A stretch of 64,000 nucleotides of DNA from assembly GCF_902459465.1 (NCBI RefSeq), contig NC_047073.1, forward strand, positions 13,268,001 through 13,332,000. Direction: 5' to 3'. The translations under genes and the position numbers were made by a program. Below the pieces are notes generated by a model. That model did not search any database, was not told where the DNA came from, and was given only the letters and a program-made list of their open reading frames with translations. The DNA is from Asterias rubens. Lineage: Eukaryota. Shown here in pieces: positions 17,901 through 43,000 of the stretch. Position 1 is the first letter of the stretch, and the number at the start of each line of letters is the position of its first letter.

Positions 17901-18258
17901 TTGAATAACTATAAGTAAGTGGGGGCAGGACACGGAAACATTTCCCAGTTTCATGCACTGCTAACCACAATGTTAACCAATATTAACATAACTTATAAGT
18001 CCGACTGTTACAAATTACCCCCCCCCCCCAAACTCAACTGGGATTTTTTTTATTTTAACAAAAATTACATAATCGAAACTCAAGCTAAATCCCACGCAAA
18101 TGTTACGTAATAAACCGCTTTTAAAAAGCAAGCTATTTGAAGTAAGTACCCTTAAAAACGTATTAGTTGATAAATAAACAGTGATATATTTCTTTGAAAA
18201 GCAGAAATTGTACCTCAGGAGGATCGTTCTCGAACAGTCTTTCGTCGTCGATCGCCAT
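14929..18258 (-). CDS. UQCRH: Cytochrome b-c1 complex subunit 6 (hinge protein), 94 aa, 4 coding exons
   Basis: Exons 18258-18214 (MAIDDERLFENDPPE), 17075-17031 (EEEEEEEEEDEEDLV), 16481-16320 (DPRDGILEEC...CTQELFDFIHCVDHC), 14961-14929 (SADKIFKNVK*). All phase 0, GT-AG. Confidence 0.95.
15186..16118. mobile_element. ~930-bp non-autonomous element with CAGGG(C/T)TCGA ends in UQCRH intron 3
   Basis: Starts CAGGGCTCGAAT and ends ACTCGAACCCTG. Subterminal TTTACTGGACCG occurs near both ends. No transposase ORF recognised. Confidence 0.55.
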
Positions 18259-19004
18259 TTTGCAGATGTAGTAACTGCAATATCTAACCGGTATCTGGTG
18301 TTGTTAAAACGGTGTATCCGATTGGTCAAAAGTGCCAACAGACTATTATTCTGACCAACCATACTAGCTGTTCCATGTAACCAAAAAGTTGAGGCAAACG
18401 TGCTTTTGCTCGGGTCGTCGAATGATGGCGCCCTTCTTCAAATTGAGAGTAGGAAAAAATGTTGGTGGGGGTCGGGGGGGGGGGGGGGGGGAATTCTGGC
18501 AGCCCTTTACAAATTTGGTTCTCTGGAAGAGTTAGTCTTCGGGTGATGTACACATTAGGATAAATTTAACTCTTAATACACAGGGATCAAGAGTGAAGCT
18601 CTCAATCATGTCAATTTGCTTTTTGAGAGTAATTTTGTTTTTGTTTTAAGAACAAAAAGGGCTGTGCATGTTTAATTAAAACATCGTTCTTGACAAACTA
18701 AAACTAAGGACTTACTCAGTTCAAATAACTGCAACTGTGGGACATAAAGCAAGTCCACATTTTATGCCAACACAAAACAGTTCAAACAGTTCCTATAGCA
18801 TCGTACATGTATAGGGAAGGGGAAGTGGCCAATATTTACATGAAAGCCGTAAAAAAATGTGTCCAAAATAAGTGACAAGTTTCAAAAGTTCAGATTTTCT
18901 TTTTAAAGGCACATGTGTCGATTTCACAAAGAGTTAGGACAAGTCCTAGGAGATACAAAAGACGTACGAATTGTACTCGTCTCAACTCAAGATAAGACAA
19001 GTCT

Positions 19005-20756: not shown

Positions 20757-23700
20757 TTATCGGATGCTTTGTCTGAGTTTGAGTGTACCCGACATGGCTT
20801 TTGGGTCTCGGGGCCCCTTCTTTGCGGATTTCCCGTGAGTTTCACTCTGGAAACACTTCCATAGCCTCAGAGTCTCATCTCCTGCAGCTGTAGCCACTGT
20901 CGACCCATCAGGACTCATGCACATGTGAAGAATACGTGACGTATGACCTACAAGGATAAAAAGGGTGGACAAATAATTACCTTTTGCTCAAAAGAAACAA
21001 TTGGGATATGGGTAAAACAAAACGTTATTCTTCATCCCCAATGCAAATTTAACATTAAATCCTGGTTCATACAAATTGTTGACGTCACAGGGCTGTTTTC
21101 GCAGTGAATGTTTTGTAAAAAGTTGAACACAAGTCAACTGATGCAAATTGTTCATTGCGATTACTGAGGTAACAGTTTGTGTTACATTCACATGAAGTGT
21201 GAACCACGCTTCATTTGTTGTGGTACCAACTGCAAAAGATTTTAGTATTCTAATGCCTTTAGCTAGCCTAGGCAATCCCGGTGGTCTAGTGGAAAGACAT
21301 GCTCTAGAATGGCAAAGGTTTTGGGTTTGAATCCCACCCGTGAAATTTGCCAACATATTTTTTTTTTCTTTTTTCACAGGACTCAGGAAAAGCACCCAGT
21401 ATACAGTGGTTTACACATCAGTGTATGGGTAAAACAAAATAATATTTGAAAACATGTGTTTGCATAGCTTAAAGGTTAGCTTTTCATAAAAGTGAATCCT
21501 CAGAGAAATCACAATTGTAAAAGTTAACAGGGCAACATTTTCTTCATTTAGTTTGTTTACGCTTTATTAAGCAGCTCTATAGAATTTCAACCAGGTCACA
21601 AAGAACCTTGCTTTCGTTTAAAAAGTTGTATGACGATTTCTAAGCCCAAAATTTAATTAATGAAGGGGGACAGAAATTTTCCTTTGGCCAATAGCTTTGG
21701 AGGAAAATTTAAATTTGTATTGGAAATTTGCAATTGCTGTGGGTTCCGTGGGCTATTTCGAGACCGTCATTTTCTGATGAATAGACCTACCGAGGAGTTC
21801 AGCTGTTCTTGTCATTGCTGGGTACTTCCAGATGACGAGTTGATTCTGAGCGTAGCCGTGGGCCGACACCAACTCCCGATACTCTTTGGACCAAAGAACT
21901 GAACAGACCTATCACAATGAAAACAAAATGTAAACAAATCATTAGTTGTAAATAAATAATAATGGAGACGGTGACACTCCTGGTGCAGAGAATAAAATGA
22001 CATTTGAGATATATACAAATAAACAGAAGACGGTAACAACATATTTTTCAAAAGAGACGAGTTTTGAGGGTTTATTGGGAGGTAGAAAGTCTCCTTTAAA
22101 TCAGTTTGATGGGTATTTTTAATAATTCAATCATCTGAAGGAATAACCTCAAATACAATGTACGTGACTCTTGTCAAAACAAGATCGCTGGAACTGGCCA
22201 TAATTACCTCTTTATATCATGAACAGCAAAACAAAGAAACAAACAGCAGAAAAAGAGTATCAGGATTTCAGAATGTACTCTTTATTGACGATGTGACCTA
22301 TGTTTACATTAAAACTGCCCTCTGTTGAAAAAACACCGTATACGTCATGTTTCGCCGGGCAAAAAGACTTGTAGTCATGGTAAGATTGCATACACTTTTT
22401 AGCTGGCTGCCAAAACACAAAGGTTTTGCCCGGCGGTATGCGCGCGAATCGTGTTATGGTTGCCGTGTGACGTCAGAGGTCGCATCGTCTATAAGCGGAA
22501 CCTTGTTATAACAGTACTCTTTATAATGAGTGTTGACTGTGTATAACAAACAAATAAATATGAAAAAATAAAATACCTGTGATTTAGTGTCGATGCTGTT
22601 CAGGCAGTTGCCGTTGCTGACATTCCAGAAGCGCAGGAATCTATCTGCAGTGCCACCCCCACTCACTAGTACACTTGGCTGCCAGGGACACCACGCTAGA
22701 GCCTAGAGAGAAAAAAAAACCACAAACAGAGTCAGATTTTAATTTTAATTTGAATGTGAACTTCATTTCATATGTAGGATTTGAAAATTTGCAGGGTGGA
22801 AATACGACACCATGTAATGACTATCTCCGAGTTAGGGTGGTTCTGAAAAGAAAAAAAAAACGTTGGTTTCAACTCGACGTTTAGATCAGTATGCTCTGAT
22901 CGTCTTCTGGAGAACGCTATTTCATTTCATATGTCACTTCAGAAATAGTCCCAATAAACAGTAAGCCCATATGCATATAATGTGCATTATCGGCGGGCAA
23001 AACATTTTGGGTGAAATGAGAGTCAAAGCAACACTCAGCAAACCAGTTTGATAATTGTTGACACCCCGATAAAGTAAGAGTTAGGAGACCATGTGCATTT
23101 AAGGTGGTAAATCATTTGTTTTTGAAAACGTTGGATTGCTTAAATTCTATGTAAATGTAGATGTACTAAAAAATATTAATTTCAAAAGGTGGTCGCTTTT
23201 TTAAAATATCCTTGAAAATCCGGAATGGATGTTATTGTAGGTACAGTTTCCCTTTTACAAACTACATTACTTTGAAGTGAAATGTTTCTCAAATTGCTAA
23301 ATACTATCAAACACTGCTGTAGGCTTTTATTGCCATTAATTTTCAAGATTCCCTTTAAATGATAGCACTGACCTTAACGGCAGCTTGGTGCTGGGTGAAT
23401 GTATGAATCGCTTTAGATGGGTCTCCGTGTGTTGCTGAAGGCCAGATGTTTAAGAGGTTGTCATTTCCCCCACTGGCAAGGTACCGACCATCCGGAGCCC
23501 ACTTGAGCCCACACACCTCTTGGGTATGCCCAGCTAGGCTAGCTATCTGATGGTTCTGGACTCGTACATCATGGTGGTGGATAGCTCCTGATCGTGAACC
23601 ACTGCAGAGATAAATCAATGGTGCATACTTGTAAAATGGGACTTTTAAATGGTACAAAAATGAGATGGGATTAAGTTAACCATAACAACATACGAGACAA

Positions 23701-25215
23701 TTAAAGTCAGGGGCATCATTGAACAAAAAGGAGATCAAATGGAGATGGGCAGGCCACCTGTCAATGGTCCAAGACAACAGGTGGCCCAGACGAATGACAT
23801 AATGGCAGCCAAGAACAGGCAAGAGAAAGAGAGGTTGGTAAAGGGCACCCAATGAGGAAAAAGTTAAACCATTGATACACTTTCAGAAAACAATCAAAAC
23901 AATCAATTATGGTTTTATATAACGGGGGAAGTGGAGGAAGCGACAACTTGATTACTTGTCAATTATTTCTGTAATATTGTGTTTCGTCGGATATCTTAAA
24001 AATGGGAGACTTTGGAACGCTATGTGGCAGAAGACTTACCAAGTAAGTTCCCATTCGTATTTCTAAGCATGCACACTTTAACGAGAACACTGGATTTACC
24101 TGGTATGTCTACTGCCACCTTAGCTCCCAAAAATGTCCCATTGCTCAAGTTTTATTTTAAGTTAAGAGATCTTACCTGCTGAGGATGTAGCTATTCCAGG
24201 CAAGTGAGCCAACTCTAGCAGCATGACCGGTCATGTTCCGTAACCTCTTAGTGGCAGTAACATCCCACAGCTGCAAACGAAAAAAAAAAAAAGGTAACTG
24301 TAACTAGACATTTCGGTTTTGTTAATTTACAAAAACAACATGTTCGTGAGTGATGTCATCAAGTTATGATTGAATCAAGACTTTGGTGTCTACATTTTCC
24401 CTTTTCAATCCAATGTAAACCCAAACGCTACGGCCAGAGAGTGAAATTTTGTAGGGACACCAAGACCAAGTAGGAAACACTTAGCACAAAAACTTGCTAA
24501 ACACAGAAAAATCTTACTTATCAGAAACTTGTTACGAGTTAAAACTCCATAAGCTTTACATTCTTGCAACAGGTGACCTACTCATGCGTTGCATAGCAAA
24601 GAAATATGCTAAGCATTATTTTCTGCTTAACAGCTTTATGAAATTGGACCCAGGGCAACAGAGGCAATGTCCTACGTCCGCCCAAATGGCCGTTCCTAAG
24701 ACAGAAGGACAGTGACAGCTTACCTGAACCTCCCCTGTGCTGGTCCCAACGGCCAGGAAATTGCCTTCCTGTATCCAAGACACGGAGCAGACGTACTCTT
24801 CCTGACCCTCCAGCTGCATGAGGTGATTGATACTACCCGAGCTGGCGTCCCACAGGTACACGTTATTGGCTAAGGCTACGGCGAGATGATTGTTCCTACT
24901 CCAGTCTATCAGATTCAAATCTGCAAATAATAATAATAATAGTGGCGTCTTCTATAGTGTGCATATCCAGGACACTCAGTGACGCTCAAGGAGCTTTAAC
25001 ATATATTTTCCTGCAAGATATGTGGGACTAGGTTTGGATTATGAGACCTACTACTTCTACAAGGTGCTGTAGCGCAATGTGCTGCCAATCAAACCAGGAA
25101 CACCGGGATGACTCCCTTCACAATAAGTGCACTGGGTTCCTCTTACGTGTGTTACACATCTACAGGACCACTGGCTTTATGTCGCATCCGAAGGACAAAG
25201 CATCATATCCGGTGG

Positions 25216-25248
<33 letters not shown>

Positions 25249-27668
25249 TCAAAGTCTTATATAGCGCATGTATCTACCAAACAAGGTACTTAAGGCGCTG
25301 AGTATATACAAACTTTCAGAATAATAGGTTATTGCAGTGATGGATTCTGAGACCCATTTATTTAGCACTGTATAATGGTTTACAAGGTGCTACGGGTGCT
25401 ACGGCGCATACAGCAGCCACCACCAGGAACACCGGGGCGAACCCCTTCGCTTGTCGAAAAGTGCACTGGGTTCTTTTACATGCGTTACACAACACATGGG
25501 ACCAAAAGCTTTACGTTCCATCCGAAGGACGAAGCAATGGTTAAGTGTCTTGCTCAAGGACACAAGTGTCACGGCTCAGGATTCAAACCCACACTCTGCT
25601 GATCAGAACCACCAGAGTTTGAATTTGGTGCTCTTAACTGCTCGGCCACGACACTTCCATTGCCATTGGAATGAATGAATTAATNNNNNNNNNNNNNNNN
25701 NNNNNNNNNNNNNNNNNNNNNNNNNNNNNNNNNNNNNNNNNNNNNNNNNNNNNNNNNNNNNNNNNNNNNNNNNNNNNNNNNNNNNNNNNNNNNNNNNNNN
25801 NNNNNNNNNNNNNTAAATTAACAAATTCTTTTTGGCTTACAGTAATCATCCAGGATATCAGGGGCGTCCAGTATCCTCTCTGGAACCTGTGGAATATGTC
25901 GTATTGACTTCTTGGTTGAACCTGGCGTCTTGGTCTGACTGTACAACACTCTCAAGTTATTCTGGAAACCTGTGGATTGAAAAGTTGGGGTTGGATTTGA
26001 TTATTTACCATGCATTATCAGGAAGCTAGTATTGTTATCAAAGGGGTGGGAATGAGATGTAGGTCACTGGTCACATTTTGGTGCTTCTGTTTCGGTGCAA
26101 TAAACTTGTTCCTTTTTCATTTAAACTCATGCACAAATTACAATATAAGTCGGTATATATTTCACATAAAATAGGTGAGGCTTGTGGTTGTGGTTGTACT
26201 TTGTGTAAATCTCTTTTGAGTAGTGCTTTTAACCGATGGTTCTTTTTGCAACCAACACTACTCAAAAAAGATTTACAAATAGTGCTACCCAAAACCTCAC
26301 CTAAGGTGAAAATCCAAAGAAGACATTTCTTTACCTTCAGGAGCATCTGGGGGTTTACTTTTGTACGATAGGATCTTTGCATTGAGCAATTCTCCGTTGA
26401 GGTTGTCCGACATTTTCTTGCAGTAGTCAATCTTCTGTGGGCTCTGTGTGGCTTGGTTCTCTTGGTTTGTGGAGCAGTTCAGCAGTTTAAAGGCGCCGAC
26501 GTCAAAGTTTGTGCCGCTGCGATTAGGAATGAAGCGATCTCCGACGGGTAACTTGGATGGTGTCTTACCTGAATCGAGAAAAAAATGTGAACGAAGTTTA
26601 GTTAGCAAGCTTGTGATTTTTTTTTGATAGAACTCGGGAAGGTACCGAGTATAACAGTGCACACATCAGTGTAAATTGTAAAACAAATAACATTTTGTTA
26701 AAAGTTCTAAATCCATAAATCAGAAGCAACATCAATGTTCACTTGGTGCTGGCACCCCTTTGAAATGTTCCCCTAGAATTTATTTTGGGGGTCCTTTTGA
26801 AAAATTAAAATGGCTTTGCTTGCTCAAAGTGAATTTCGAAGGTTTTGTCTTGATAATGCTGTTCTTGTGTAGAGCAATTTCTGAGCTTCACCCGTATTTC
26901 ATGGCTCTGGCTTCATGGCTTACCACCGAATTCTGTGCTTGTGATAATCATTTGTTCGCTTAAAACAGGGCAAGCAACAAATTTTCCTCCTGGCCGTGAA
27001 AGCAAAGAATACCAAGTAGTGTGAAGTACACAAGGGAGAGGCAAAAGTTCCTGCTATAACCTGTGCCATACGCTTGATGCAAGCGCGGTGTTTGATCAGC
27101 AGAGTGTGGGTTCGGGTCCCGGTCACGACACTTGCTACGTAAAATTGGGAGGTAGTGGTTTCTGCTCTACCAGCCAGGCTTCAGATTGATGATACCCAAG
27201 CCAACATCCATATGAACTGTAAAGGGGGTAACTTCTGCTTCAGCTCTAGGGGTAGGCAGCATTGGCCTCTAGAATAAAATAATTGTAGCCCACACCTTGA
27301 AGTGGCATTCAGGCCTTGTGTGTCTGCGACTTGCTTAAAAAAAAACTAAAAATTAAAAAACATGTACTGTACAAGTCTTGGTCTTGCAGATTTTGTGTCA
27401 GAAGTGTACCTGGTGTTTTGCTTCTTTTTCCATTTGGAGTCTTTGATTTTGATGGTGTCTTTGAGCTGAACGACTGATTGGACGTCTTCATCGGTGAGAT
27501 GTTTCCAAGACTCTTGTTGAGGCTCTTATTCATGCTCTTGTTCACCGAGGCGTTATTGCACATTGATGTCTCTGATGCCTTGCGTTGCCAGCGCATTGCT
27601 GGACCCCCGATTGGACCATCTAACCTCACAAGGTTGTTGATGTCCGAGTCAAATTTAAACTGGGACAT
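20757..27668 (-). CDS. CDC20: Cell division cycle 20 / fizzy, APC/C co-activator, 525 aa, 9 coding exons
   Basis: Exons 27668-27410, 26568-26335, 25969-25841, 24920-24724, 24270-24176, 23601-23373, 22702-22577, 21908-21791, 20947-20757 (1578 nt, phases consistent). MSQFKFDSD...RWQRK N-terminus, C-box [23 protein letters not shown]40 repeats and C-terminal IR tail. Confidence 0.97.
21275..21445 (+). mobile_element. tRNA-derived SINE, family 4 (CACAGGACTC...TATACAGTG...CACATC body)
   Basis: TGGTCTAGTGG A-box and GGGTTTGAATCCC B-box. Copy at ~42455-42600; body fragments at ~13280-13330, 26630-26690 and 42325-42390. Confidence 0.65.
24925..25212 (-). mobile_element. 5'-truncated Deu/Nin-domain SINE abutting the CDC20 exon 4 acceptor
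   Basis: Minus strand GAACCCAGTGCACTTATTG...CCCGGTGTTCCTGG core, L2-like tail and (ATT)n ending 4 nt before the acceptor CAG. Confidence 0.65.
25216..25654 (-). mobile_element. Full-length tRNA-derived SINE with Deu/Nin-type core and L2-like tail
   Basis: Head GTGTCGTGGCCGAGCAG...GGTTTGAATCC, then GTGTCCTTGAGCAAGACACTTAACC and GTAAAAGAACCCAGTGCACTTTTCG...CCCCGGTGTTCCTGG, then GCGCTATATAAG and a long (ATT)n tail. Confidence 0.75.
25685..25813. other. Assembly gap (129 N) in a CDC20 intron
   Basis: Run of N. Confidence 0.99.
27087..27345 (+). mobile_element. tRNA-derived SINE family 1 copy in CDC20 intron
   Basis: GGTTCGGGTCCC B-box, the same body as 141-427 and an A-tail. Confidence 0.8.
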
Positions 27669-28329
27669 CGCTAGTGGTGTAGAAGTGTTAAAGTCTTGCA
27701 AGCAAATGATGTTTTTCACTCTGAAATCTGTAATACAAAAGATACAATTAATTGTGTGACTGTGGGTAACGTTGTTGTTGGACTTTGAGGTAATCGTAAG
27801 CCTACACGCTTCCAAAGGTTGGATGGAGGCTGAATAGAGGGTTACGCTTATGTATAAATCGCATTTTCAACTTAAAGATAATTTTTTTCAGGTGAAAAAA
27901 AAAAAAAAACATTCATTACCAAGACCAGACATGGGCCTGTAATCCTTTTTTAAAACTTTGGCTGCAGATGTAAAAATTTACAGTGCCAAGTTTACACTGA
28001 CTGGGTCTATAATAACAAAAGTCAGAACGACTAAGTTAATATTAACTTTTTATGAAAAGATGACGGACTAACCATGCTGATGGTCCTACTAATTGCCATC
28101 AACTCGCTTACGTGCCTTCAACACCCACTACATAGATGGCAGGTACTACCTATGGATTAGTCTTAACCAACCCAAGATGTCAGCGATCAATTTACACAAA
28201 GTGCAGTACATATTTTTAACTCTGGGGAAAACGACTCGGTTTGAGCCAAAAGATGGCGACTTCTCTCTCCTCAATCTCTCTCCGACTGCCTGTTTGGTAG
28301 CGTGTTCTTCACTCACTAGTATATCTTAC

Positions 28330-28440
28330 TATTAAATGAAATTATGAAAACTAAATCGGAGCCTCAGTCTGGTCGTGTTAAATCTGTCAGTCAGGCGATC
28401 GTGCACAACAAAGAAGTGGATTTTTACTTCAGTATCAGTC
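28330..28440 (-). other. CDC20: Candidate non-coding first exon / proximal promoter of CDC20
   Basis: Donor A|GTAAGA at 28329, an acceptor at 27727 upstream of the ATG, and a CHR-like TTTGAA at 28451-28456. The upper boundary is a guess. Confidence 0.35.
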
Positions 28441-28489
28441 ATGATTTTGATTTGAACTAAAATGATTTGCACAAAATTGTATGCACAAT

Positions 28490-28841
28490 CAGTCGGTCTC
28501 GTTGACATTGAGTGGAACCAGTACCTCGTCCATCTATCTACATCAACAAGAGGTCACAAATCCCGCTTTGTCATCCCTCACACAAAATCAACTGTGTTTA
28601 CTAACTCCTTCTTCCCACGTACCATCTGGGACTGGAATAGCCTAGCAGTAGATCCAGCGGAGTACAAATCGCTTGAAGCCTTTAAGCTTGCACTTAAGGT
28701 TTTTACTTGCACTTGTTTACACTAAAAATTTCCGCACTCGACAGCATGTCCTGCTTATTTTTCTTGGACGCATGCGCAAACACGCAGTGCATTTATCCTC
28801 ACATATGCGAGGCTGCACTTTACAGGAAGGAAGGAAGGAAG
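28490..28841 (+). mobile_element. 3' fragment of a CR1-group non-LTR retrotransposon
   Basis: Encodes TRGHKSRF...NSFFPRTIWDWNSL, the typical ORF2 C-terminus, followed by a short 3' UTR and a (GGAA)n tail. Confidence 0.75.
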
Positions 28842-28859
28842 ATCTTGCAGGAAAAGTTT

Positions 28860-29030
28860 GTGCAATTGCCGGCCGGCCGATCGTGCAGGAATGGTTTGTG
28901 CAATCGACCTAAACTATTGTGCACGAATAGATTGCGCACTTTGCCAACAGTGCAGGAATAGTGTGCGCAATACGGCGATAGTACAGGAATAATGTGCGCA
29001 ATTTGGCGATCGTGCAAGAATTATTTGCTC
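28860..29030. repeat. ~30-bp tandem repeat (GTGCGCAAT...GGCGATCGTGCAGGAAT)
   Basis: About 4-5 degenerate units in the CDC20/GPX7 intergenic region. Confidence 0.6.
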
Positions 29031-29814
29031 CCAATTATTTTCGCAATTTGACAACAGTCAAAGTTCAGGAATGGTTTAGCGCCCGGCCAAAATTTAAACC
29101 TGTGGAGAAAAACCTGAACCCAAAGGTTGATTTTTTTTAAACAGCACTTTACAAGAAATTCTTCTTAGGTTTAGTTCGTTTCAGCATAGTTTCAGGAACC
29201 GTAATCTAGAATTTAGAACTTCATGATTAAGAATAAGCTTGGTTGTTGTGTTGGACCAGGAAGAAGATCTTTTAACTTTTTCATCTATTCTAAAATTTGC
29301 CAAGGCCAAAAAAAATGTAAATACACATTTACAAGACGTGATCACAGTGTATGCAACAGTAATTTTGACTAAACGTGTAGGTCACATTCTTAATATCGTA
29401 TTATTTGTTGCATTTTGATTACCTGTTCAGCAAAAACCTGTCATCTAGACGTCAAAAGAGGATCGGAAGATTGGCTTTTCTTGCATGACCAACGCCGTGT
29501 ATGTGTGTGTGTATGTTTTGTTTATTAAGCGTGGGTTTTAAATGACCCGCGTTTTGATTGGTTCTCTGAGATGCAGGACTCTTGATTGTGATTGGGCCAT
29601 ATGTGAAGTCACGTTAAAACCAGTCTTTATTGTTGTTTACCAGTAAAAGGAACCAATTTTACTCAATAAAACACATTATGAATAAATATACTCATAATTG
29701 TGGATATAAAATAGTATTTTTGTTGTTGCTTTTATGAAGTATTTAAGTTAAATGTTAACGTCAAGTTCAAAATCTCGTTACGTTCGAGATTTACTCAGGC
29801 ATTTCGTATTCAAG

Positions 29815-32800
29815 ATGGCAGCCCCCATCAGAAATTTGACGTGTCAAAACCGTTTTCAATTTATATCTTTCCTATCAATTAACCACTCTATTTTTCTAAT
29901 ATGTACTCTAGTTAATCTTACAAATGGCAATTTCTATTCACACTTTGTCATGGACGGTCAAGGAAGGGAGATTTCCCTGGAGGTTTTTCGGGGAAAGGTG
30001 ATGGATTTTTGTAACTCACGTTCGTTCACGTTGTTATCTAATTCTACCTCCATGGTTATACATGGTTGGAGCATTCCCTGCTTCCATGATGCAGCATGCA
30101 CAGTGCAGTGTTGCACTCGTTGCATTTAATCCCCCCTATTCACCAACCATTTTGCTTGTGTTTGTGCAGTAGACTAATGGATGTAGTGGAATTGTTGTGC
30201 ATGCCAATACCTCAACTTTCAATGACCAGCATGTTTGCTTTGTACGCTAAGCTTGCTTGGGTTGCAAGACAAAACTTCTAATTTAGGATGTGCACACGCT
30301 CTTTTGTTGTATTCTTCTATCATTAGTTTGTCTGCCATTTCTCTATTGTCTGCCATGCCATTACCCCCCCCCCCCGCATAACCTCACCCCCATGCTCAGA
30401 CTAGCCTTGTTGTTTGTGTTAAATTTGCATCCGAAAAAGTGGAAAGGGTCACCAACATTTGTTTGACAATTTTACCCTAAATTAACTAACATTAATTTAA
30501 GGCATTGGACACATATTGTTAATAACTATTAAAACAAATGTTAGCACAAAAATCGTACTTGGTAAGAGTTACGTTGGGAGGTTAATACTAATATGTAGAA
30601 CATTGTGTAGTATTAACGCAGTCTTCGAGAACGAAGTAATTTTTCACGACATTGATTTCAATACCTCAAAATTTGAATTTTAAGTCTTGAAATCGGCATC
30701 TGAAAGCACACAACTTCGCGTGACAAGGGTGTTTTTTCTGTCATTATTATCTCGCAACTTCGACGACCAATTGAGCTTAAACTTTCAATGGTTTGTTATT
30801 TTATTCAATCATCAATGACAATTGCCAATACCCACGGTTCTTTTCAAACCACGGTGTTACCGCAAACCTTTCCAAATCATGATTCCACCATGCAAAGTTT
30901 CAAATTCTACCTATTAAACTGTTTCGATTTGTCCATGTGCACAGCAACTTTCACAAATCACAAAAGTAGTTTGTTCCATCGCGTGCTCAACAACTCGGGT
31001 TTAGACTCGCTGTTCTCAACGTTTATTAGTAATTTGTAAGCATTTTCCAAGTTTATTTTCTGCAAATCTCTTTCCGAGAACCTTTAAGTTGCCTTGAGGA
31101 AATAAAGCAACCCAAACCAAAGAAAATAACCCACAAGGGGTCAACCGGTTGTTTTATTTCTGGCTAAAAAACGGTTTGTAACCTCTTGATGGATGGGAGC
31201 TAGGTTCCGGGTGTCAGGAACTTTGAAGGGGAAAAATGCTCAGTTGAATCAGCATTCAACAGTCAAAAGGAGTGTTAGCCTGATTCAATTTCATCACTTT
31301 AAGCATTATTAATCAAAGAAAAGTTCAGTTTCGTAAAAGCATATCAACAGCTGGTCAATCATTGAATTGTATTAAAACATCATGTGTGGATAGGTTGTAG
31401 AAATTCAAACTGAAGATTTGTCAACATGAAGTTTTGAACGCTTAAAATTAAATAGAATGACTGGAACAAACCTGATACAGAGAAACTAAGTAATGTGCAC
31501 AAATAGCTCAAAGGAAATAAGATTTTCGGGGAGTGGGGAAACTGCACAGAACTCGGCTGCATACTATTGAAACGCCGAGTAGGTTTTTGTTTTTGCTGAA
31601 ATAAGCCAGTAAAACCTCTAATGCAGTAACAGTCTTCATCAATGGTATTTGTTTCTTTATTTACTTGCGTCTAGTTGATTCATAGGCCCATGGAATATAA
31701 TTACAGTTAGACCAAGTTACGATGCATATAGTGGAGAATGAAAGACAATCCTTATTAAGGAAATAAACTTGTATTTATAAGCACCGCAATGACATGCGTT
31801 GAATCGCAATGAAGCTAACTCAACCCAACATGTGATATTCCAATCCACTTGTATTAAAATTGCACACATTTTAATATTTAGAATATAAAACTAATGCGAA
31901 GGAAAGCGAGTACCATTCTAAAGCATCTAAACAAATTGGATGTACATTGTATCCCAAAAACAACACTTCAGCAGCATCCATTGTTTCATTTTTAGTTGAA
32001 CACATTTTATTCGGCCATAAAAGTGCCACTCAAATTTGACGCTAGTTGGTACTGTCCAAAAAGGACTCAGCTAATTTTTGTGTAAAACCTGAAGAGATGT
32101 TGATACCATCTCCGGAGCATTGGTTAATTTCAGGAACGTTTTTAACATGAGTGGTTCAAAACTTTGTATTTTGAACTTTTCTCTGACTAATGCAGGCACA
32201 ACTCGTTATGAATTTTCAGCAGTTTGCAAAATTGTTTTAGAGCTTTGACAAACAAGATTTGTAACACTATTGGTAATTATCAAAGACCAGAATTCTCACT
32301 TGGTATTATATCAAAAATTTGAGCTCAAAGTGGCCGTCGAAGTTGTGTGGTTTCAGATGCTTGATTTCGAAGTTGATGTCTCGAAATCAATTCGATTGTT
32401 TTAGTGAGAAATTACTTCTTTCTCAAAAACTACGTCACTTCAGAAGAAGCTGTTTCTCACAATGTTTTATACTACAGGGATGAGATTGTTCAGACTTTTG
32501 GCTGAATTCAGACTTTTTATGTCAGCCTGGTGAAGAAAATCGGACAATGTTTTGTGGATACTGTTTCCAAAAGCTCCGTGAAATCTCTAACCCCGGGGGT
32601 TACCAAACGGTAGAAATGGCATCATTTCAAAATACCTTTGAATCATTTGTATCCATGATTTCAGACTTTTTCGTTCGTAATGACTCTCACCCCTGATACT
32701 ATTAACAGCTCTCTATACAAGTAAGTTGTTATGCTAACAATTATTTTGAGTAACTACAAATAGTGTCCAGAAGAGCAATGTTTTTATAACCATTCGATTG

Positions 32801-34314
32801 TTGTGATCATTATAATGTGAACTATAACAATAACTTGTGAAAATCTCTCACATCAAAAAGTGGTCGTGTTATGAGATGCCGCCGAAAATCTGGTCCGAAA
32901 ATGTTCATATGCAAAGAATAATAAGTTACATGTATATGTACACAATATGAGAAGCGTTACCGACAGTAATAAATTCTCTTGATCAAATTTTATCTCAAAA
33001 AACAAAGTATCTTTTTACATAGCAACGTTACTTTCGAAGTGAAATGTTTTTAAATGTAAATCCATGTACATGTACTATCGAAAGGCGACAGGCTTTTAAA
33101 GGGCACTGGACACTATTGGTAATTGTCAAAGACCAGTCTTCTGACTTGGTGTATCTCAACATAGATGCATAAAATAACAAACCTGTAAAATTTGAGCACC
33201 AGGTCGTCGAAGTTGCGAGATAATATTGACAGAAAAAAACTGTTGTCAAACGAAGTTGTGTGCTTTTCAGATGCTTGATTTCGTGACCTCAAAATCTAAT
33301 TCTGAGTTCTCGAAATCAAATTCGTGGAATATTACTTGTTTCTCGAAAACTACACGTCAGAGGGAGCCGTTTCTCACAATGTTTTATGCTATCAACAGCA
33401 CCCCATTACTCGTTACCAAGTAAGATGGTATGCAAAAATTATTTTGAGTAATTACCAGTAGTGTCCACTGCATTTAATGTTTGCTTATGTTTGTTTTTCA
33501 CAGCCAGCTCTTGTCGTCAACGTAGCCAGTGAGTGTGGATACACTCAAAACCATTACGAGGACCTGGTGTGGGCAAGTCAACAGCCAGGAATAGATGAAG
33601 AATTACACATTCTAGCATTTCCTTGTAATCAGTTTGGCCAACAGGAGCCGAAGGGTGCCGAGGAAATAATCGCCTTTGCCCGGGAGACTTACGGGGCTAC
33701 CTTCCCCATCTTCGGTAAAATTGACGTGATCGGAGAATACGCTGATCCTGCTTTCAAGTATTTAAGTACGAAGTTCCTTTAAATAATTCATTATCAGTAT
33801 TTGACGGAAATTATCTCTATTTTTATAAGATGCACCAATCATGAAAATAATATGAGCGTACATTCGTTGTTGTTTAACATATGTACATGATTCTTATGTT
33901 TTGTTTAATCAGAACTCTGTCCTAAATTTCGTGGAAACGCGCACTTGGGTCAACTATGAATTGGATTAAATAGTCATAAACTTTGATGTGCACTTAAACA
34001 AGTATTATAAATCAGTCATTGTATCGGGACTCTTTCCAAAATGTCAAAGAAACGGGTACACGAAACTTGGATAATAAGTATCAACCATTTCTTATTTATT
34101 TTTAACAGCTCGGTCATTGTATCGTGTCTCATAATTTTATATAACAGGTGCATCAAGTGGTCGGGAACCGGACTGGAACTTCTGGAAGTATCTGATCGAT
34201 AGGCAGGGGAGGGTTATCGACGCCTGGGGACCAACCACTCAAGTTTCAGAAATATACGACTTTCTACTTGCAGCCACCCAAACCCCACGCCTTGTGAGAA
34301 GAGATGAGTTCTGA
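29815..34314 (+). CDS. GPX7: Cys-type ER glutathione peroxidase GPX7/GPX8-like, 203 aa, 3 exons
   Basis: Exons 29815-29997, 33504-33765, 34148-34314 with consistent phases. Motifs VVNVASECGYT (peroxidatic Cys), LAFPCNQFGQQEP and WNFWKYL, hydrophobic N-terminus, C-terminal RDEF (KDEL-like). Confidence 0.93.
33096..33477. mobile_element. MITE, dominant TTAA/AGG family, ending ~25 nt before the GPX7 exon 2 acceptor
   Basis: TTAA at both ends and family TIRs. Confidence 0.85.
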
Positions 34315-34380: not shown

Positions 34381-34716
34381 CAAGGCAGTGGACACTATTG
34401 GTAATTAGTCAAAATAAATATTATCATAACATCTTTCTTGATTACGAGTAATTGGGAGAGGTTGATAGTGTAAAACATTGTGAGAAACGGCTCCCTCTGA
34501 AAGAAATTAGTTTTCGAGAAAGAAGTTAATTTCCACAAATTTGATTTCGAGACCTCAAGTTAAGAATTTGAGGTCTCGAAATCAAGCATCAAAAAGCACA
34601 CAACTTCGTGTGACAAGGGTATTTTTCTTTCATAATTATCTCGCAACCTCGATGACAGATTGAACTCAAATTTTCACAGGTCTTTGACAATTACCAATAG
34701 TGTCCACTGTCTTTAA
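34381..34716. mobile_element. MITE, dominant family, just downstream of the GPX7 stop
   Basis: AGGCAGTGGACACTATTGG ... CCAATAGTGTCCACTGTCTTTAA. Confidence 0.8.
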
Positions 34717-35380
34717 TTATACATGTTTATTAAACATTTCCTTAACCCTTCAACTGCAAATAGAAAGGACTATACCATTTTTTTTCATACATTTGTTACC
34801 AAAATCACCATTACAAAATCTGCCCTAAAAGTCTGTTTTTAATTTCTTCACTAACATTGCATATGCAAAAAAAAACGTGACAGGTCAAGAGAATTTAAAC
34901 ATCTCCCATAAGTGTTTCCTTGTGACTTGAAGGCTATGCAAAATTGGATTAATAAAGTTGTGATACGAAAATAAAACCACTGTTGAATTCTTTGAGTTTT
35001 TAACAAGGCCAACTGTATAGAAAGGTTTGCGGTAACACCATGCAATGACCATCTCTAAATGAGTTGGTTTCACAACTCGACATAAGAAGACCAGTTTTTT
35101 CGTAAGCGAGCGAAAAAGTGTACAGTCACACAACAAACATATTTTCGATTGATATGATAATTATGTTACATAACCTTGATAATGAATGTTACATGGAATT
35201 TTCCATCCAACGTAAACCAGTCCATTCATTGTGGTATAAGGGGATAATAAAAAAAATAGGTACCTATGTTCAAAAATTGAAATCAAATGACCTTTGAAAC
35301 ATTCAATTCACGTGACCTACAACCATCCTATCAAATGATGCATCCAGCTGGATAGGGACCAATGCATTTCGTTGGTGGTT

Positions 35381-35742
35381 GGCAGTGGACACTATTGGTA
35401 ACTGTCAAAGACTAGCCTTCACAGTATGCATAAAATAACAAACCTGTGAAAATTCGAGCTCAATCGGTTATCGAACTTGCGAGATAATAATGAAAGAAAA
35501 AACACCCTTGCCACACGAAGATGTGTTTTTAGATGGTTGTTTCGAGACCTCAAGTTCTAAATCTCTGGTCTCCAATTCAAATTCGTGGAAAATTACTTCT
35601 TTCTCATAAACTACGTCACCTCAGAGGGAGCCGTTTCTCACAATGTTTTATACAATCAACTTCTCCCCATTACTCGTCACCAATTAAGGTTTTATGCTAA
35701 TAGTTATTTTGAGTAATTACCAATAGTGTCCAATGCCTTTAA
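35381..35742. mobile_element. MITE, dominant family
   Basis: GGCAGTGGACACTATTGG ... CCAATAGTGTCCAATGCCTTTAA. Confidence 0.8.
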
Positions 35743-36231
35743 CAACTGCCATTACAATCACCACCCAACATAAGCATACAATAACAAGCCTGTGAAAACT
35801 TGGGCTCAATCGGTCATCGAATTTGCGAGAAAATGCTGAAAGAAAAAACACCCTTGTTGGACGAATATGTGTGCTTTCAGATTGGAATAAAAGACTTCTA
35901 GCTAGAAATTAACTCTTTCTCAAAAACTACGTTTGTCGTTAGTTCAGAGGGAGTGTTTCCACAATGATTTATACTATCAACAGCTCTCCAATGATCTTTA
36001 CCAAGTCAGTTGTTAAGTTATTTTATGTTCTTGAGTCATTCCCAAACTTGTACCTTCCCTTTAAATTCATCGATATTAAATAATGTAGACTTGACTTGTG
36101 CTGCAATCATCACAGAGAACACCGCCCTCATTGTTTACAGCTCCTACCCTCGGCCGAAATAAAAACCACGAACATGTTGAAGGTTGAAACTGGAATTGTT
36201 GAAGCATGGTTGAAGCAAGTGATTTTTACAA

Positions 36232-36307
36232 GTGCGTAAATGGCAGTATGTGAGCACAGCTGGAAGTATAAATACACAGCTATGCCAACATCTTGCCTTC
36301 TCCACAC
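36232..36307 (-). ncRNA. mir-31: microRNA mir-31 hairpin, copy 1
   Basis: Minus strand 36298-36277 reads AGGCAAGATGTTGGCATAGCTG, the conserved miR-31-5p. Complementary 3p arm CAGCTGTGCTCACATACTGCCA and a pairing basal stem. Confidence 0.93.
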
Positions 36308-36951
36308 TCGAGAAATGAAGAACAGACATCAGCAAACCCAAACATCTTCGAGAAGTCGATGCAGCATCTACAAGAGTATAAATAAAAACAATGAATCTTA
36401 CACTAAAACAGTATACTAGCAGTGTCCCTTCTATATAGTTCTATACAGTTCCCATTAACACTGTAAACCACGCCCTTATTTAAATAACAACCACTTTGAG
36501 GCAAACACTGCTAGGGAAAGTGTATGCCCAATATATTATAGACATTATGCAAATTTCCACAACAAACAATATTACAAATCATGTGCTATTTATGCAGAGC
36601 ACAACTCAAGGCCGAGTACCATTACGCTATATCTATATCTATAAAGTATTTAGAAAATAGTTACTGGTCCTATGTTATTGACCCACACTAAAAATAACTA
36701 CATGTACTTTCTGATGTTATGAAATTGTTGACATGCTTAAAATAATTTCGGTGTCAAAAAATCAAAAACTACAACACCTCAGCAAATAAAATCAGGGAAA
36801 GCAAAGAAAGCTTTCTACCACCATTATCTTCAAACCGTGCCCTTTTATACATCGTCTAATAACGCGACGGTGACGAGGTATATCCAACCACAGAAGCAAC
36901 AGGTGGAATATTGAACTGTCCAATTGTGCCGGGCTCAAGTTGTACGAACAG

Positions 36952-37026
36952 GCATACAAATGGCAATACGTTGGTACAGCTGAATAAGAATAAACCAGCT
37001 ATGCCAACATCTTGCCTTCTGTACAC
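36952..37026 (-). ncRNA. mir-31: microRNA mir-31 hairpin, copy 2
   Basis: Mature 37017-36996 is identical to copy 1. 3p arm CAGCTGTACCAACGTATTGCCA; different loop; basal stem pairs. Confidence 0.93.
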
Positions 37027-37407
37027 TTGCATCTTGAAGAAAAACACATAGCTGAGCACTGCATCTGAAGAGAGAAAGTTTGCTAATAATACTCGAACCA
37101 TTTGCACTGTGCCTCACCATAGCACAAGGGCTTTACTTGGAACATGTGTGTGACGTGTGTGCACTGTGCACGCATCATTCATACCTGCTTTGAAATTCTA
37201 ATGAAGTTACGTAAGACGCATGTTGACACACCTCACTGGCAATAAGCATGAGCAAACAAAAATGGCGGGCAATTCCTCCTCCATGGGGCAACACACGGAA
37301 GTTGAGGCTTCTTTTACATTAGGGGAAGCTTTGATGGCTTCCAAAAGACACTCACTGAAAAAAACCCAGATGGTCTCTTCGAAGTAGGATGGCCCCGAAG
37401 CAAGTAC

Positions 37408-37488
37408 GAGAAACAAAATGGCAGTATGTGAGCACAGCTGAAAGTTGACAACACACAGCTATGCCAACATCTTGCCTCTTTGGCACTC
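37408..37488 (-). ncRNA. mir-31: microRNA mir-31 hairpin, copy 3
   Basis: Mature 37477-37456 is identical. 3p arm matches copy 1; loop and flanks differ. Confidence 0.93.
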
Positions 37489-39773
37489 TAATTTAGCAGG
37501 CAAAATTGCCGAATCAAACTTCACAGTGTGGTCACTGTGTGCATCACTTAGGGCTTCGTAACCACAGCGGGTTGGTATAGTAACAACCCATTAGAAAGCC
37601 CGTTAACTCGTAGATTGATTAGATTTAATTAAGAATGATGGGTGTAGACTTCATAAGGTGCAAGCCTCTATGGTGCAAGCGACTGTTTAACCATAGAGTA
37701 AGGGTTTAACATGTCAATTAGAAGCCATACTATTAGATGTCCATTAGCTTGGAGGCCACTCGGTAAAAAACGAAATATGTTAGAACTGGCCGTTAAAGTG
37801 GAGATACATTGCTCTTGTTTGGAAAGAAAATGGGCACTCTTTCAGGTGTAAATATAAGGCTACAGCATTTGCATCGTGATACCACACACATTACATTCAA
37901 AATAGTTGAGGAAAACCGCTGTCAAACATACATACAAGACAATTTAAGAATGATAATATTTCTGAACATAAAATTTGGCGCACTCCCAAAATTTGGTATT
38001 TCAGCTCAACTGAGCACAAGATATTTTTGTTCATTGGTATAGAAATACGTACCTACAATCAAAAATGGAGTTGTAGTGTTGAAATTAGCCCGTGTGTGAA
38101 TTGACCTTGGTATGGCACTATGATTTTCCACAGTAGAAAAGCTTTCATGGAACGGTTAAAAGGCCGCATATCCACGGCATTTTACCCATGGACCAAAGGT
38201 CTCTTTGCACTGCGATAAAGATAAGCCGGGGTGTGTTTTATGTATACAATACCTCAGGTCGGTTTTAAAACGTTGCGTGGCTTATTTACCTAATTGATTT
38301 GAGTATCGCCACGTTTAGTTCATTCCGGTTAGAGTTAACAATTTATTAATAGCACAGGTCATCAACACACACCTACAATGATCAACAATAACATATTTTT
38401 TTTGACAAAAGATTTTATGTCATCTTTGAAATAAATAATTGACTTGATACATGATTCTACCTGTGGAGGCTACCTCGTGCTCTTGCCTACCTAGTGCCAA
38501 TGATCGTATCCTTCATAGGTGCAATATTCTTCTTCCCCTTTTATCCCACAGGTCGTGGTTCGTGACAATGTACCCCATCCCAAATCGACCCATCCACCCT
38601 TCTCCAACAAGTAAAGATAAGACGTTACGTAACTAACATTTGTACCCATTGCTTGGGTATTGACTGAGGGTATACAAAACGGGGTTGTACCGCAACGATT
38701 GGTTGTGACTAAACGCCATTTTAACAATGCACGTGCGTAAACCATTTCTGAGAATTTTTTAAAATGGCGGGAAAACCACAGCAACGAGCAATGTCATAAT
38801 GGCCGTCTCTAACAACGGAACTTGAACTTTGTGAGAAAACCACAACATTCTTCGAGTGTTTTCATCAATAATTATGCAATTTTTTTTAATAATGCCATTT
38901 TGTATAATTGTTCAATCACACACAAGTTTTTGAAATAGTAACTTTTACCAAAATGAGGCTCGTCTCGCATGATTTTGTCGCACAAAATGTAAAACCTAGA
39001 TTGCAAACTTTGACTGAACTTTTAAAATCATTGAAGAGTAACAAATAATAAAAACTATTTCCTATATCTATAACGCGGTAGGAGTGACCTGCGTATGTTA
39101 TTCCGCTCTATTCATAAGATTTTTTTCAAGGAACACTTACAAAAGACCGAACAATAGGTTATTTTAGATGAATTCATAGGATCCGGTCAGTGAACATGCC
39201 GCTCCACGATGGTGGTTATAAAATAGGTGTAGTTTTACACCGCACGGTGTGTATGTGTAAAAGCATCAAGGTAGAAATAGAAAGATGGAGGTCAACAGAA
39301 AGTCGTCAATGCTTCACATAGCTGAGTTTTGTTAGGTAGTTCGTCATGAATTATTGCAGTTTGTTATAAGATACAGTTATCACTAGCTATACAAAGGAGG
39401 CAATGTTCACTTAAAGTTTGATATATTGACATATAAGCACATGGTTGACAATAAATGATGACTAAGATGACACAATATTACATATAAAATTGTTATTAAT
39501 CTATTATTTATAAATGTTAAGATCAAAAGATCAAATATTCTCCATGATTTAAAAGATGCTAATTTTAAGTAAAATGTGATCCAATTAAAACGGTGTTCGC
39601 CATCAACATTCATATTACCACTTCTCCGTTAAGTATTAGATGTAAAACTTCAGATAAAACATCTACAACAAGCATTGGGATAAGTCGAAACACTTCACAA
39701 GGATAAATGGTACATTGATCCATTGATCATTATTATACATGCATTTCAAAAAAAATACTTAAATCATACTCAC

Positions 39774-40059
39774 TGACGAACATGGGAGAGGTGTCTAGCG
39801 TCTGATCTGGCGGGTGTACTGATGTTGCATGAGTGTTTAGTTGTGTTGTTGTGTCGAGTCGAGGACTAAATGCTGGTAGCAGTTTTGCCAGGTCAAATTT
39901 CGGGCATGCTTGCGTCGACCATCGAAGCATAGGAGTGGTACCCATGTCTGAACCACGCCGGTAATGCAGTGGAGAGCACCCCATACCCACCTTTAAATTG
40001 ACACGGCTGGGTGGCTTTCGATTCCATTTGGCTGGTTTCAACAAGTGAATAGGTGCCAT
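39774..40059 (-). CDS. CDC20: Candidate distal alternative first coding exon of CDC20 / host of the mir-31 cluster
   Basis: ATG 40059 in good context with an upstream in-frame stop. 95 codons + 1 nt, then a consensus donor CA|GTGAGT (phase 1, same as CDC20 coding exon 1). MAPIHLLKPAKWNRK resembles the CDC20 N-terminal API....PARWQRK motif. GC-box GGGGCGGGG near 40323. Confidence 0.45.
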
Positions 40060-43000
40060 GCCATCAGTCACTACTGTGGTTTCCTATTCATGTTGGGCAA
40101 AATGGTGCACGCTCACGATGCTGCATTCCACCGGTCCATTGTTACGTGGTTTGTGTATTATGGGCGTTTTACGTATACGATTGACATTCAAATTACTAAG
40201 CTTTGTGTTTTGTTTGACCCAATGAACAATGTAGAGATGGGTGACGACATCTACGCACTAGGGGTAGATTTAAATAACTTTAGAAGTCTGGTGTCGTCCA
40301 TCCACTCACAGCCGAGCCAAAAGGGGCGGGGTTTAGCTGACCAGTAACAATTGCTAGTGAACCCCAACGTTAATTATCTATCACAGGAATTTCGCCTAAT
40401 CCGGTTTTAGATGCCTTTACGCATAACAATACCACACCAAGTATAGCTTAATAGTATCACCCGGGATACGGCAAACCCCAATGCACAGGCCAATGCTCCA
40501 TGGACTTCAATGCAAACACTCTACTATAGTCCCCTACATGGTTTGTATAGAAAAAGGCTTTAAGACTGGACTTACCAAGCTTTTTTTCCTTTCTTTGGAA
40601 AGCCTTCTTGTGCAATGAAAAAGCTTCACAGGTTGCGTTTGCTTTAGTTTAAGATGGAGGGAAAGAAGAACTAATTGACGGGTGGTGAGGGGAAATGAAG
40701 AGTTTTGTTTTGAGGGGACGCGATTAGGGAGTTATTGAAATGAGTGGTCAATCTGTGCATAGAGCAAGGATCTGTGAGAGTTAAATCTACAGTTAATTTG
40801 TGAAAAACCAGAAAAATGTCACTGCGTGGTTCTTGGTAAAATTAATGAAACCAGTCAGTTAAAATCTTGCTTATACGAAGGAATAATGCAGTTTGCATTA
40901 AGGAAGGATAATAAATGATCAAAAACACTAGTTTTACTCACTGTTGACAAATGGAACCAACTTTTACAACATGTCCTAATATTTATCTGTACTTTAAATA
41001 TATATATATAACTCTTGCTTAGTTATATTGGGCATTTCAGAAAATATGTTTAATTTGAAACGAGGAACACTGTATTTGTTAAGAATACAAGTTTTGTTAT
41101 CATTTTTTAAATATTCCATAGTATTTTCTTCTTCTAAACCCCAGAATTTAAACGGTTGTCATTTATGTCATAGCATTGACAACCCCCGCCAACAGTTTTC
41201 TTCCACTTGCAACTTCGACAACCAATTGAGTTCAAAGTTTCACAGGTTGTGCACATGTGGAGATACATCAAGTGAGAAGTCTGGTCTTTGACAATTATCA
41301 AAGGTGTCTTGTGTCTTTAAAATGTATAATGAATGCGTCACTATGACGACACGCAATTTTGAATTGGCACACCTTCTACGATGCCCAACAATGAGGAGCA
41401 GAGCTGCCTCATGACGACATGATTCAGCAAACGAGAAGGTTGTGAAATGCGCCCAATCTTTGCCAAACGTTTAAGTGGTTGACCCGAAAGAAGATTAACA
41501 GATATACAACAAATTTAAACGAAAAAGGGAAAACATTTTTTTTTTTAAACCAACGACCTCATATAAAAAAATCTTTGCTCAGCCCCAAATTACTTAATTC
41601 GTTTAACACTTTTTTATTCTTCTCCCATTACACCAATATTGTGTTCATGTCTCGTAATCAAGTTATAGGTGAACAAAAAAACGTGGGTCAAGACAAGTTG
41701 GAAACTTCACCGGTCTTAAAACCTTAAAGGTACTGGGGCTCTATTGGTAATTCCTCAAACTAATTTTTAGCATAAAGCTTACTTGGTAACTAGCAATGGA
41801 GAGCTGTTGATAGTATAAACCATTGTGAGAAACGGCTCCCTCTAAAGTAACGTAGCTTTTTTTTAAGTGTAATTAATTATCCCCCAATTAATATTAAAAA
41901 ACTTCGGTCCTGAAACCTTTTATTTGCATCTGAAAGCACACCCATTGTGTAAAAACGGGTGTTTTCTTGCATTACTCTCTTGAACTTCAATGACCAACAG
42001 CCAAACTTTGGACGGATTTGTTAATGCGTTTATTGGGATACCAAGGGTGTCCAGTGCCTTTAAAATGATTGAGCATCAATGAAGGGAACGCGGCATGGAC
42101 TTGTGAAAAGTGGAAACGCCTCTTTAATTTTTCTTTAATTATCCCCCAAAAATACCAGAAGTTGCATCGACTAATAATAAAGAGAAATTACTTTTTTTAA
42201 AGAAGAATAAGAGAAAGAGAGAACAAAAACAACACAAATATTGGTATAATTTTTTTTAAAGGACAAGACTTTCTTCAAAACTGCATGCCTGTTTAAAGGC
42301 ACTTTACTCATTTAATGTCAAAAACAAGCTCTCACTCGGGAATGTACTGAGTATACAGTGCTTACACACATCGGTGATGGGTACAAAATAACATTAACAT
42401 CTCTTTTAATCGTTCCGGTAGCCGCTGCCAAACATAGGATTCGAACTGCTTCAGCTACCGGACACTGCTCTAGAATTGCATGGGTCGTGGGTTCGAATCC
42501 CACCCGAGTAACATGCCTGTGATGGTTTTTTTTTCCCCACAGGACTCGGGAAAGAATACTGAGTACAGTGCTTACACACATCAGTGTATGAGTGAAATAA
42601 TGAGCTCGATCTCACTTGGTGTATCCCAATGCATAAAGTATTATGTAAACATTAATTGGTTGAATTAGTCATCAAAGTTAATGAAAGAAACTAAACCCTC
42701 TACACAAATTTGTGTGATTTCAGAGTGCATGTAAAAGGCCCGAGGCTTGAACTTTTGTACTAAAAATTTTATGAGAAATTACCTCTTAAAAAAAAATCCC
42801 TACGTTACTTCAAAGGGAGTCGTTTTTAAATTTTTAATATTTTTATCAACAGCTCTCCATTGCTCGTACCTAAACATTTTGAGTAACTACCAAATGTGTC
42901 TAGTACCTTTAAGTCATGGCTCATCACAATATTATGACATACTTTATTTTATCAATGCCCCTTTAACACTTCAAGCAACCTCACTTCGTAATGCCCAAAG

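Follow-up and report, generated by a model that had tools for sequence, protein, structure and literature searches.

MiR-31 is usually treated as the product of a single gene, and human MIR31 is single-copy. This raises the question of why three hairpins with the same mir-31 mature strand lie side by side in the sea star Asterias rubens, and whether they are a recent tandem repeat or old duplicates that selection has kept. We addressed this question in a window of 64,000 nucleotides (C13:13268001-13332000), which is the whole stretch of DNA analysed here, and in the corresponding loci of other deuterostomes. The evidence makes it very likely that the hairpins are three old paralogous mir-31 genes on the minus strand, which are most likely carried on one primary transcript, give the same guide and have been kept by purifying selection.

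The exact 22-mer AGGCAAGATGTTGGCATAGCTG occurs three times in the whole window, each time on the minus strand, against a chance expectation of none in 100 shuffles. In each case it forms the 5' arm of a hairpin. We named the hairpins P1, P2 and P3 in their order of transcription (Table 1), so that P1 is the third, P2 the middle and P3 the first copy of the original prediction, which had numbered them along the forward strand. Their starts are 460 and 719 nt apart, and all three lie within 1.26 kb. When the whole window was scanned with the Rfam mir-31 model RF00661, P1, P2 and P3 all scored above its gathering score of 51 bits, and the matches covered model positions 1-83 of 83. The mature 5p strand in all three copies is AGGCAAGAUGUUGGCAUAGCUG, with the seed GGCAAGA at positions 2-8. 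Each copy folds into a long imperfect hairpin with the mature strand within the stem. The fold z-scores of the 91-nt stretches are -6.6 for P3, -6.7 for P2 and -4.6 for P1, and none of 200 shuffles was as stable. When a 1,411-nt stretch with all three copies was folded as a whole, every copy paired with itself and none with another copy, and 18-19 of the 22 5p bases were paired inside their own hairpin. By Rfam score, seed and hairpin geometry, P1, P2 and P3 belong to the mir-31 family. The original prediction had described three mir-31 hairpins with an identical mature strand on the 5' arm and had proposed folding as a check. Both its description and its coordinates are right, and the folding energies agree with it; the minus strand is the one thing that it omitted.

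Table 1. Positions of the mir-31 hairpins, conserved upstream blocks and neighbouring genes in the Asterias rubens window and of their counterparts in Patiria miniata (L058) and Acanthaster planci (L062).
Feature	Window position	Strand	Description	Patiria L058	Acanthaster L062	blastn match to Asterias
CDC20/Fizzy WD40 exons	20757-27815	minus
GPX7-like glutathione peroxidase exons	~29.8-34.3 kb	plus
P3, mir-31 paralogue, last transcribed	36229-36309	minus	5p arm 36277-36298; predicted 3p arm 36239-36260; RF00661 64.7 bits; -39.7 kcal/mol	17553-17645	17209-17302	87-88% over 93 nt; best-conserved copy
P2, mir-31 paralogue, middle	36949-37028	minus	5p arm 36996-37017; predicted 3p arm 36959-36980; RF00661 62.9 bits; -39.8 kcal/mol	17794-17875	17467-17547	~79%
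P1, mir-31 paralogue, first transcribed	37407-37488	minus	5p arm 37456-37477; predicted 3p arm 37417-37438; RF00661 63.3 bits; -35.1 kcal/mol	18182-18266	17849-17933	83-86%
mir-31 triplet as a whole				17562-18266	17218-17933
Conserved non-coding block 1	38171-38322		~680 nt upstream of P1			77% over 157 nt to Patiria (E 8e-29); 80% over 126 nt to Acanthaster
Conserved non-coding block 2	40118-40623		2.6-3.1 kb upstream of P1	20965-21073, 21493-21563	20699-20818

Outside the arms the three copies have little in common. Direct repeats in 35.2-38.6 kb are confined to the two arms (families of 46 nt and 30 nt). Among the Asterias copies the loops differ at 6-11 of 14-15 columns and the flanks at about 50-70%, and neither can be aligned, in keeping with the earlier description of loops and flanks as unrelated. 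The 3p arms, which we predicted as 22-nt strands from the 2-nt offset, a geometry compatible with cutting by Drosha and Dicer, are identical between P1 and P3 in Asterias, while the P2 arm departs from them in 5 of its 22 nt and is more completely paired. The P2 3p arm has its own seed, CUGUACC, and that of P3 is CUGUGCU; each is conserved across the three sea stars compared below, and the start of the P2 3p arm, GCUGUACC, is common to all three. The claim that the outer two copies share a 3p arm, and that the middle copy has a different one which still pairs, is therefore correct for Asterias, but the sharing does not extend to the valvatids Patiria and Acanthaster, where the P1 and P3 3p arms are 2-3 nt apart. 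In Asterias the identity may stem from gene conversion over a very short tract or from a parallel change in that lineage. The P1 3p arm in Patiria and Acanthaster has the motif CCUAC in common with P2. The copies also differ in the CNNC, UG and apical UGU motifs, which are types known to aid Microprocessor. A CNNC lies at +17 from the predicted Drosha cut in P1 and P2, a UG at -14 in P2, and a UGU opens the loop in P1 and P3; no CNNC was found at the canonical distance (+16-18) in P3.

The cluster lies in gene-free sequence 1.9-3.2 kb past the stop codon of a GPX7-like glutathione peroxidase gene, with which it is convergent, and about 8.4 kb upstream, in the minus-strand sense, of the start of CDC20. 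Exon 1 of the peroxidase matches 'glutathione peroxidase 7-like [Asterias rubens]' of NCBI with 100% identity, which identifies the genome as that of the common starfish or of a very close relative. The peroxidase has the C-terminus RDEF, which resembles an ER-retrieval signal. Between the hairpins we found no other Rfam match and no conserved coding block, and a permissive Rfam scan of 28-44 kb gave no other miRNAs. The stretch at 34400-36200, between GPX7 and the cluster, carries very high-copy repeats (summed contig depth 10^5-10^6). Inverted joints are numerous from about 34620 to about 35500, units of about 320-346 nt are repeated in tandem at 35425-35980, and the whole is probably a transposon-derived element. 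A borderline tRNA match inside CDC20 (21275-21345, plus strand, 32.2 bits against a cut-off of 29) has several non-canonical pairs and is probably a tRNA-derived repeat or pseudogene.

A covariance-model search of the complete Asterias assembly (417.6 Mb in 150 contigs) returned P1, P2 and P3 and no fourth mir-31 copy above the cut-off. The one weaker candidate for the mir-31 model, at C6:3324000-3324079 (39.6 bits), consists of a 21-nt unit like GCCATAGCTGTGGCTGATCTA repeated in tandem and hence is not a mir-31 gene. This repeat (1470-1580 of locus L007) also matches several other miRNA models and is thus a false positive for genome-wide miRNA scans. A pattern search of the genome gave two look-alikes with three mismatches, at C6:12831352 and C20:1412345, which have no hairpin fold and lie in repeat-like flanks; both have the upstream flank AAAATCTCCCTnATTGCA, so they represent one dispersed repeat family rather than miRNA genes. 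Tandem copies of mir-31 are not the rule in the animals sampled by metagenomes. The exact 22-mer is present on 38 animal-derived contigs of metagenomes, which represent 20 hairpin types and 26 of which extend at least 800 nt on both sides, and none of the 38 has a second copy within 4 mismatches.

To follow the cluster beyond Asterias, we used GPX7-like proteins from other deuterostomes to locate the orthologous loci and retrieved these, with 10-kb flanks, from Patiria miniata (L058), Acanthaster planci (L062), the crinoid Antedon mediterranea (L059) and the hemichordates Ptychodera flava (L060) and Glandiceps talaboti (L061). CDC20 and GPX7 lie head to head in all five species. In Asterias the pair (CDC20 on the minus and the GPX7-like gene on the plus strand) occupies 20757-34311, and its presence in three sea stars, a crinoid and two hemichordates marks it as an old deuterostome micro-synteny. 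A GPX7-like ORF with 61% identity in ENA ERZ21742408 (L057) has an arrangement unlike that of the echinoderms, with a CDC20-type WD40 fragment on the opposite strand 3 kb downstream and an RFX-type gene upstream, and no miRNA was found at that GPX locus. Patiria and Acanthaster each have three hairpins with the identical 22-mer, on the strand of CDC20 and 1.0-2.5 kb past GPX7, and these six hairpins score 56.6-66 bits against the Rfam mir-31 model. The best blastn matches pair the copies of the three species 1:1:1 with the order unchanged. The triplets of Patiria and Acanthaster are thus orthologous to that of Asterias and resemble it in strand, in the GPX7-like neighbour and in a conserved block about 700 nt upstream. 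They differ from it in the spacer between P2 and P3, which is about 720 nt in Asterias but about 240 nt in the other two species.

In a maximum-likelihood tree built from all nine hairpins, each paralogue falls into a group of its own, with bootstrap values of 63-82%, a moderate support that is due to the shortness of the sequences. Mapped on this tree, the paralogue labels require the minimum of 2 changes, which was reached in none of 200 shuffles. These groups, together with the conserved order of the copies, indicate that the triplication is older than the split between Forcipulatida (Asterias) and Valvatida (Patiria and Acanthaster), which is about 200 million years old. The differences between orthologues are distributed in the way expected of working miRNA genes. 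There is none at all in the 5p arm (0/198 across nine hairpins of three sea stars), and they rise through the 3p arm (12/198, 6%) and the basal stems (41/216, 19%) to the loop (80/147, 54%) and the flanks (123/207, 52-68%), so that the arms are more conserved than the loop in all three sea stars. In one basal-stem pair the changes are compensatory (CG, AU, GU and GC). By blastn, Asterias matches Patiria and Acanthaster in the GPX7 exon and in the hairpins but not in the spacers that separate the hairpins. Such a pattern of constraint argues for old duplicates under selection, and this agrees with the earlier proposal that the copies are selected and of old rather than recent tandem origin: the same three hairpins recur in the same order and strand in Patiria and Acanthaster, the paralogues group with their orthologues and the spacers cannot be aligned.

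Two other explanations for the repeated hairpins meet this same evidence. The identical 5p arms, and in Asterias the identical 3p arms of P1 and P3, might be taken for the result of a recent tandem duplication, of ongoing gene conversion or of an assembly artefact. However, spacers, loops and flanks are unrelated, and the region is present in independent public runs under three organism labels. Contigs under two of these labels match the window nearly perfectly; those under the third diverge from it by about 3-4% and extend across all three hairpins, and among the differences listed for this diverged relative none falls in 36193-36366 around P3. The presence of the same three copies in two other sea-star genomes refutes this explanation for the cluster as a whole, and a conversion tract shorter than a hairpin could at most explain the identity of the P1 and P3 3p arms in Asterias. 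The probability left to this explanation is negligible. Alternatively, a single hairpin could be a working miRNA gene and the other two decaying duplicates. The missing CNNC of P3 and the fold of P1, the weakest of the three, fit this idea, as does the lack of copy-specific reads among the runs searched. But all nine hairpins in three species have an invariant 5p arm, a near-invariant 3p arm and paired basal stems, while more than half of the positions in loops and flanks have changed. Since a dead copy would have decayed over such a time, we regard this second explanation as very improbable.

The order and strands of the genes in the window, CDC20 (minus), GPX7-like (plus) and the three hairpins (minus), suggest a further comparison, because they mirror the human locus with CDC20B, GPX8 and miR-449a-c. 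By this comparison the triplet would be intronic in a long CDC20 transcript that starts from a distal exon near 40059, and it would correspond to the miR-449 triplet that vertebrates have in CDC20B beside GPX8. The sequence proposed for the distal exon (39733-40071), however, shows no similarity to a CDC20 N-terminus (BLASTP E 5.4) and no Pfam match, and it is absent from the blocks conserved with Patiria or Acanthaster, where the GPX7 exon is present. In Patiria, Acanthaster, Antedon, Ptychodera and Glandiceps alike, the gene model of CDC20 stops before GPX7. In the crinoid and both hemichordates CDC20 and GPX7 stay together, yet neither mir-31 nor a mir-34-like sequence was matched within 10 kb of the pair. 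The seed of the cluster is GGCAAGA and not the mir-34 type GGCAGUG, and the mir-34 hairpin of the starfish lies on another contig, C18. This textbook hairpin (C18:6728038-6728058, plus strand, -48.3 kcal/mol), with the mature strand UGGCAGUGUGGUUAGCUGGUU on its 5' arm, came from a pattern search; a search of the Asterias genome with the Rfam mir-34 model RF00456 at its gathering score found nothing and so missed it. By its seed and by the outgroups, we rejected the cluster as a homologue of the CDC20B-intronic miR-449 genes of the mir-34 family. With no miRNA at this place in the outgroups and with mir-34 elsewhere in the genome, any parallel to miR-449 looks convergent, and an intronic origin in a long CDC20 transcript is highly unlikely.

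A cluster of three genes on one strand, preceded by conserved non-coding sequence, suggests a transcript of its own. Besides the GPX7 exon and the hairpins, three short stretches are all that is conserved between Asterias and the other sea stars in the 12 kb compared; the last two of these we grouped as block 2. In each of the three species 668-724 nt separate block 1 from the first hairpin, and this block has no miRNA-like hairpin fold. In block 2 the Asterias sequence is conserved in 40118-40223 and, in the comparison with Patiria alone, also in 40552-40623; the alignment of Patiria with Acanthaster covers 688 nt (70%). Neither Patiria nor Acanthaster has a called protein-coding gene at the conserved blocks. 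From its position and conservation, block 1 is a candidate promoter or cis-regulatory element, and block 2 a candidate distal regulatory region. The proximity of the hairpins on one strand, taken with these blocks, makes a single transcript with an upstream promoter the most likely arrangement, and the cluster as a real and conserved unit is probably polycistronic. Our run search found no RNA run with the cluster. The contigs of four public runs cover the unique intergenic sequence evenly and so appear DNA-like. Of the words in the 842 nt immediately upstream of P1, four rRNA-depleted metatranscriptomes contain 4-7%, a faint hint of transcription.

Published small-RNA data show that the mature product is made in sea stars. 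According to the supplement of PMC3247247, a 22-mer identical to the 5p strand of P1, P2 and P3 was sequenced as the mature small RNA pmi-miR-31a in embryos of Patiria miniata, and its first 21 nt were sequenced in adult Henricia, another sea star; the same supplement gives this 22-nt mature miR-31a for Strongylocentrotus (spu), Patiria (pmi) and Saccoglossus (sko). Such reads are not assignable to single hairpins, as the copies do not differ in the 5p arm. A second form, 'miR-31b', with a C at position 11, is reported there for Patiria and Strongylocentrotus (PMC3247247 supplement). We found no A. rubens locus within 3 mismatches of it, and none in the cluster of Patiria or Acanthaster. The miR-31b sequence is that of human miR-31-5p, which makes contamination a possibility.

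Taken together, these results support a simple model of how the cluster would work. A single primary transcript spanning P1 to P3 would start upstream, possibly near block 1. Drosha and Dicer would then cut each hairpin, and all three would give the same 22-nt miR-31-5p guide, with two different 3p by-products in Asterias. The triplication arose before the Asterias lineage parted from that of Patiria and Acanthaster, and purifying selection has kept all copies since. As the starfish guides are identical over 22 nt, the paralogues can differ only in their 3p products, in processing or in regulation. A triple dosage of one guide is a plausible and the simplest functional reading of such an arrangement. 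Most of the conservation of the 3p arms can be put down to their pairing with a 5p arm that does not vary, which leaves the possibility that the copies persist for their different 3p products or different processing without support. We can also imagine that the paralogues have lasted since before the crown sea-star split because they are non-redundant, through distinct 3p species or through distinct processing or regulation, so that the cluster would act as a fixed-ratio module, and, in a wider version, that three mir-31 genes in sea stars and three miR-449 genes in vertebrates were independently placed beside the CDC20/GPX7-8 pair. This idea seems to us rather unlikely. If the wider version were true, it would mean a shared regulatory landscape that favours miRNA genes beside this ancient gene pair.

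Set against known systems, the cluster is a familiar kind of element. The starfish copies resemble other members of the mir-31 family (RF00661; MIR-31) in the seed, in 5p as the conserved arm and in the architecture of the hairpin; they differ in that Asterias has three tandem genes where, for example, human has the one MIR31. Tandem clusters of miRNA paralogues are well known: members of a family share a strand and a stretch of a few kb, are presumably transcribed together and are long retained. Like the starfish triplet, Drosophila mir-31a/b, nematode mir-72/73/74 and vertebrate mir-449a/b/c are paralogue clusters with identical or near-identical guides; the Drosophila mir-31 copies lie dispersed, and miR-449 is part of the mir-34 family. 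The starfish cluster is therefore a lineage-specific expansion of a known miRNA family, old and selectively kept, and not a new type of element. The papers that we searched contain no description of mir-31 paralogues in sea stars.

In sea-urchin embryos miR-31 regulates the formation of the skeleton (PMC11076791, citing Stepicheva and Song 2015). The promoter of the sea-urchin gene is not pinned down in published work, and the two upstream blocks described here offer concrete promoter candidates. In sea stars mir-31 is a three-gene cluster that has been stable across lineages, so experiments that knock miR-31 out or down in Patiria or Asterias have to target three loci. The cluster also provides a clean natural case in which to ask why miRNA paralogues with an identical guide persist.
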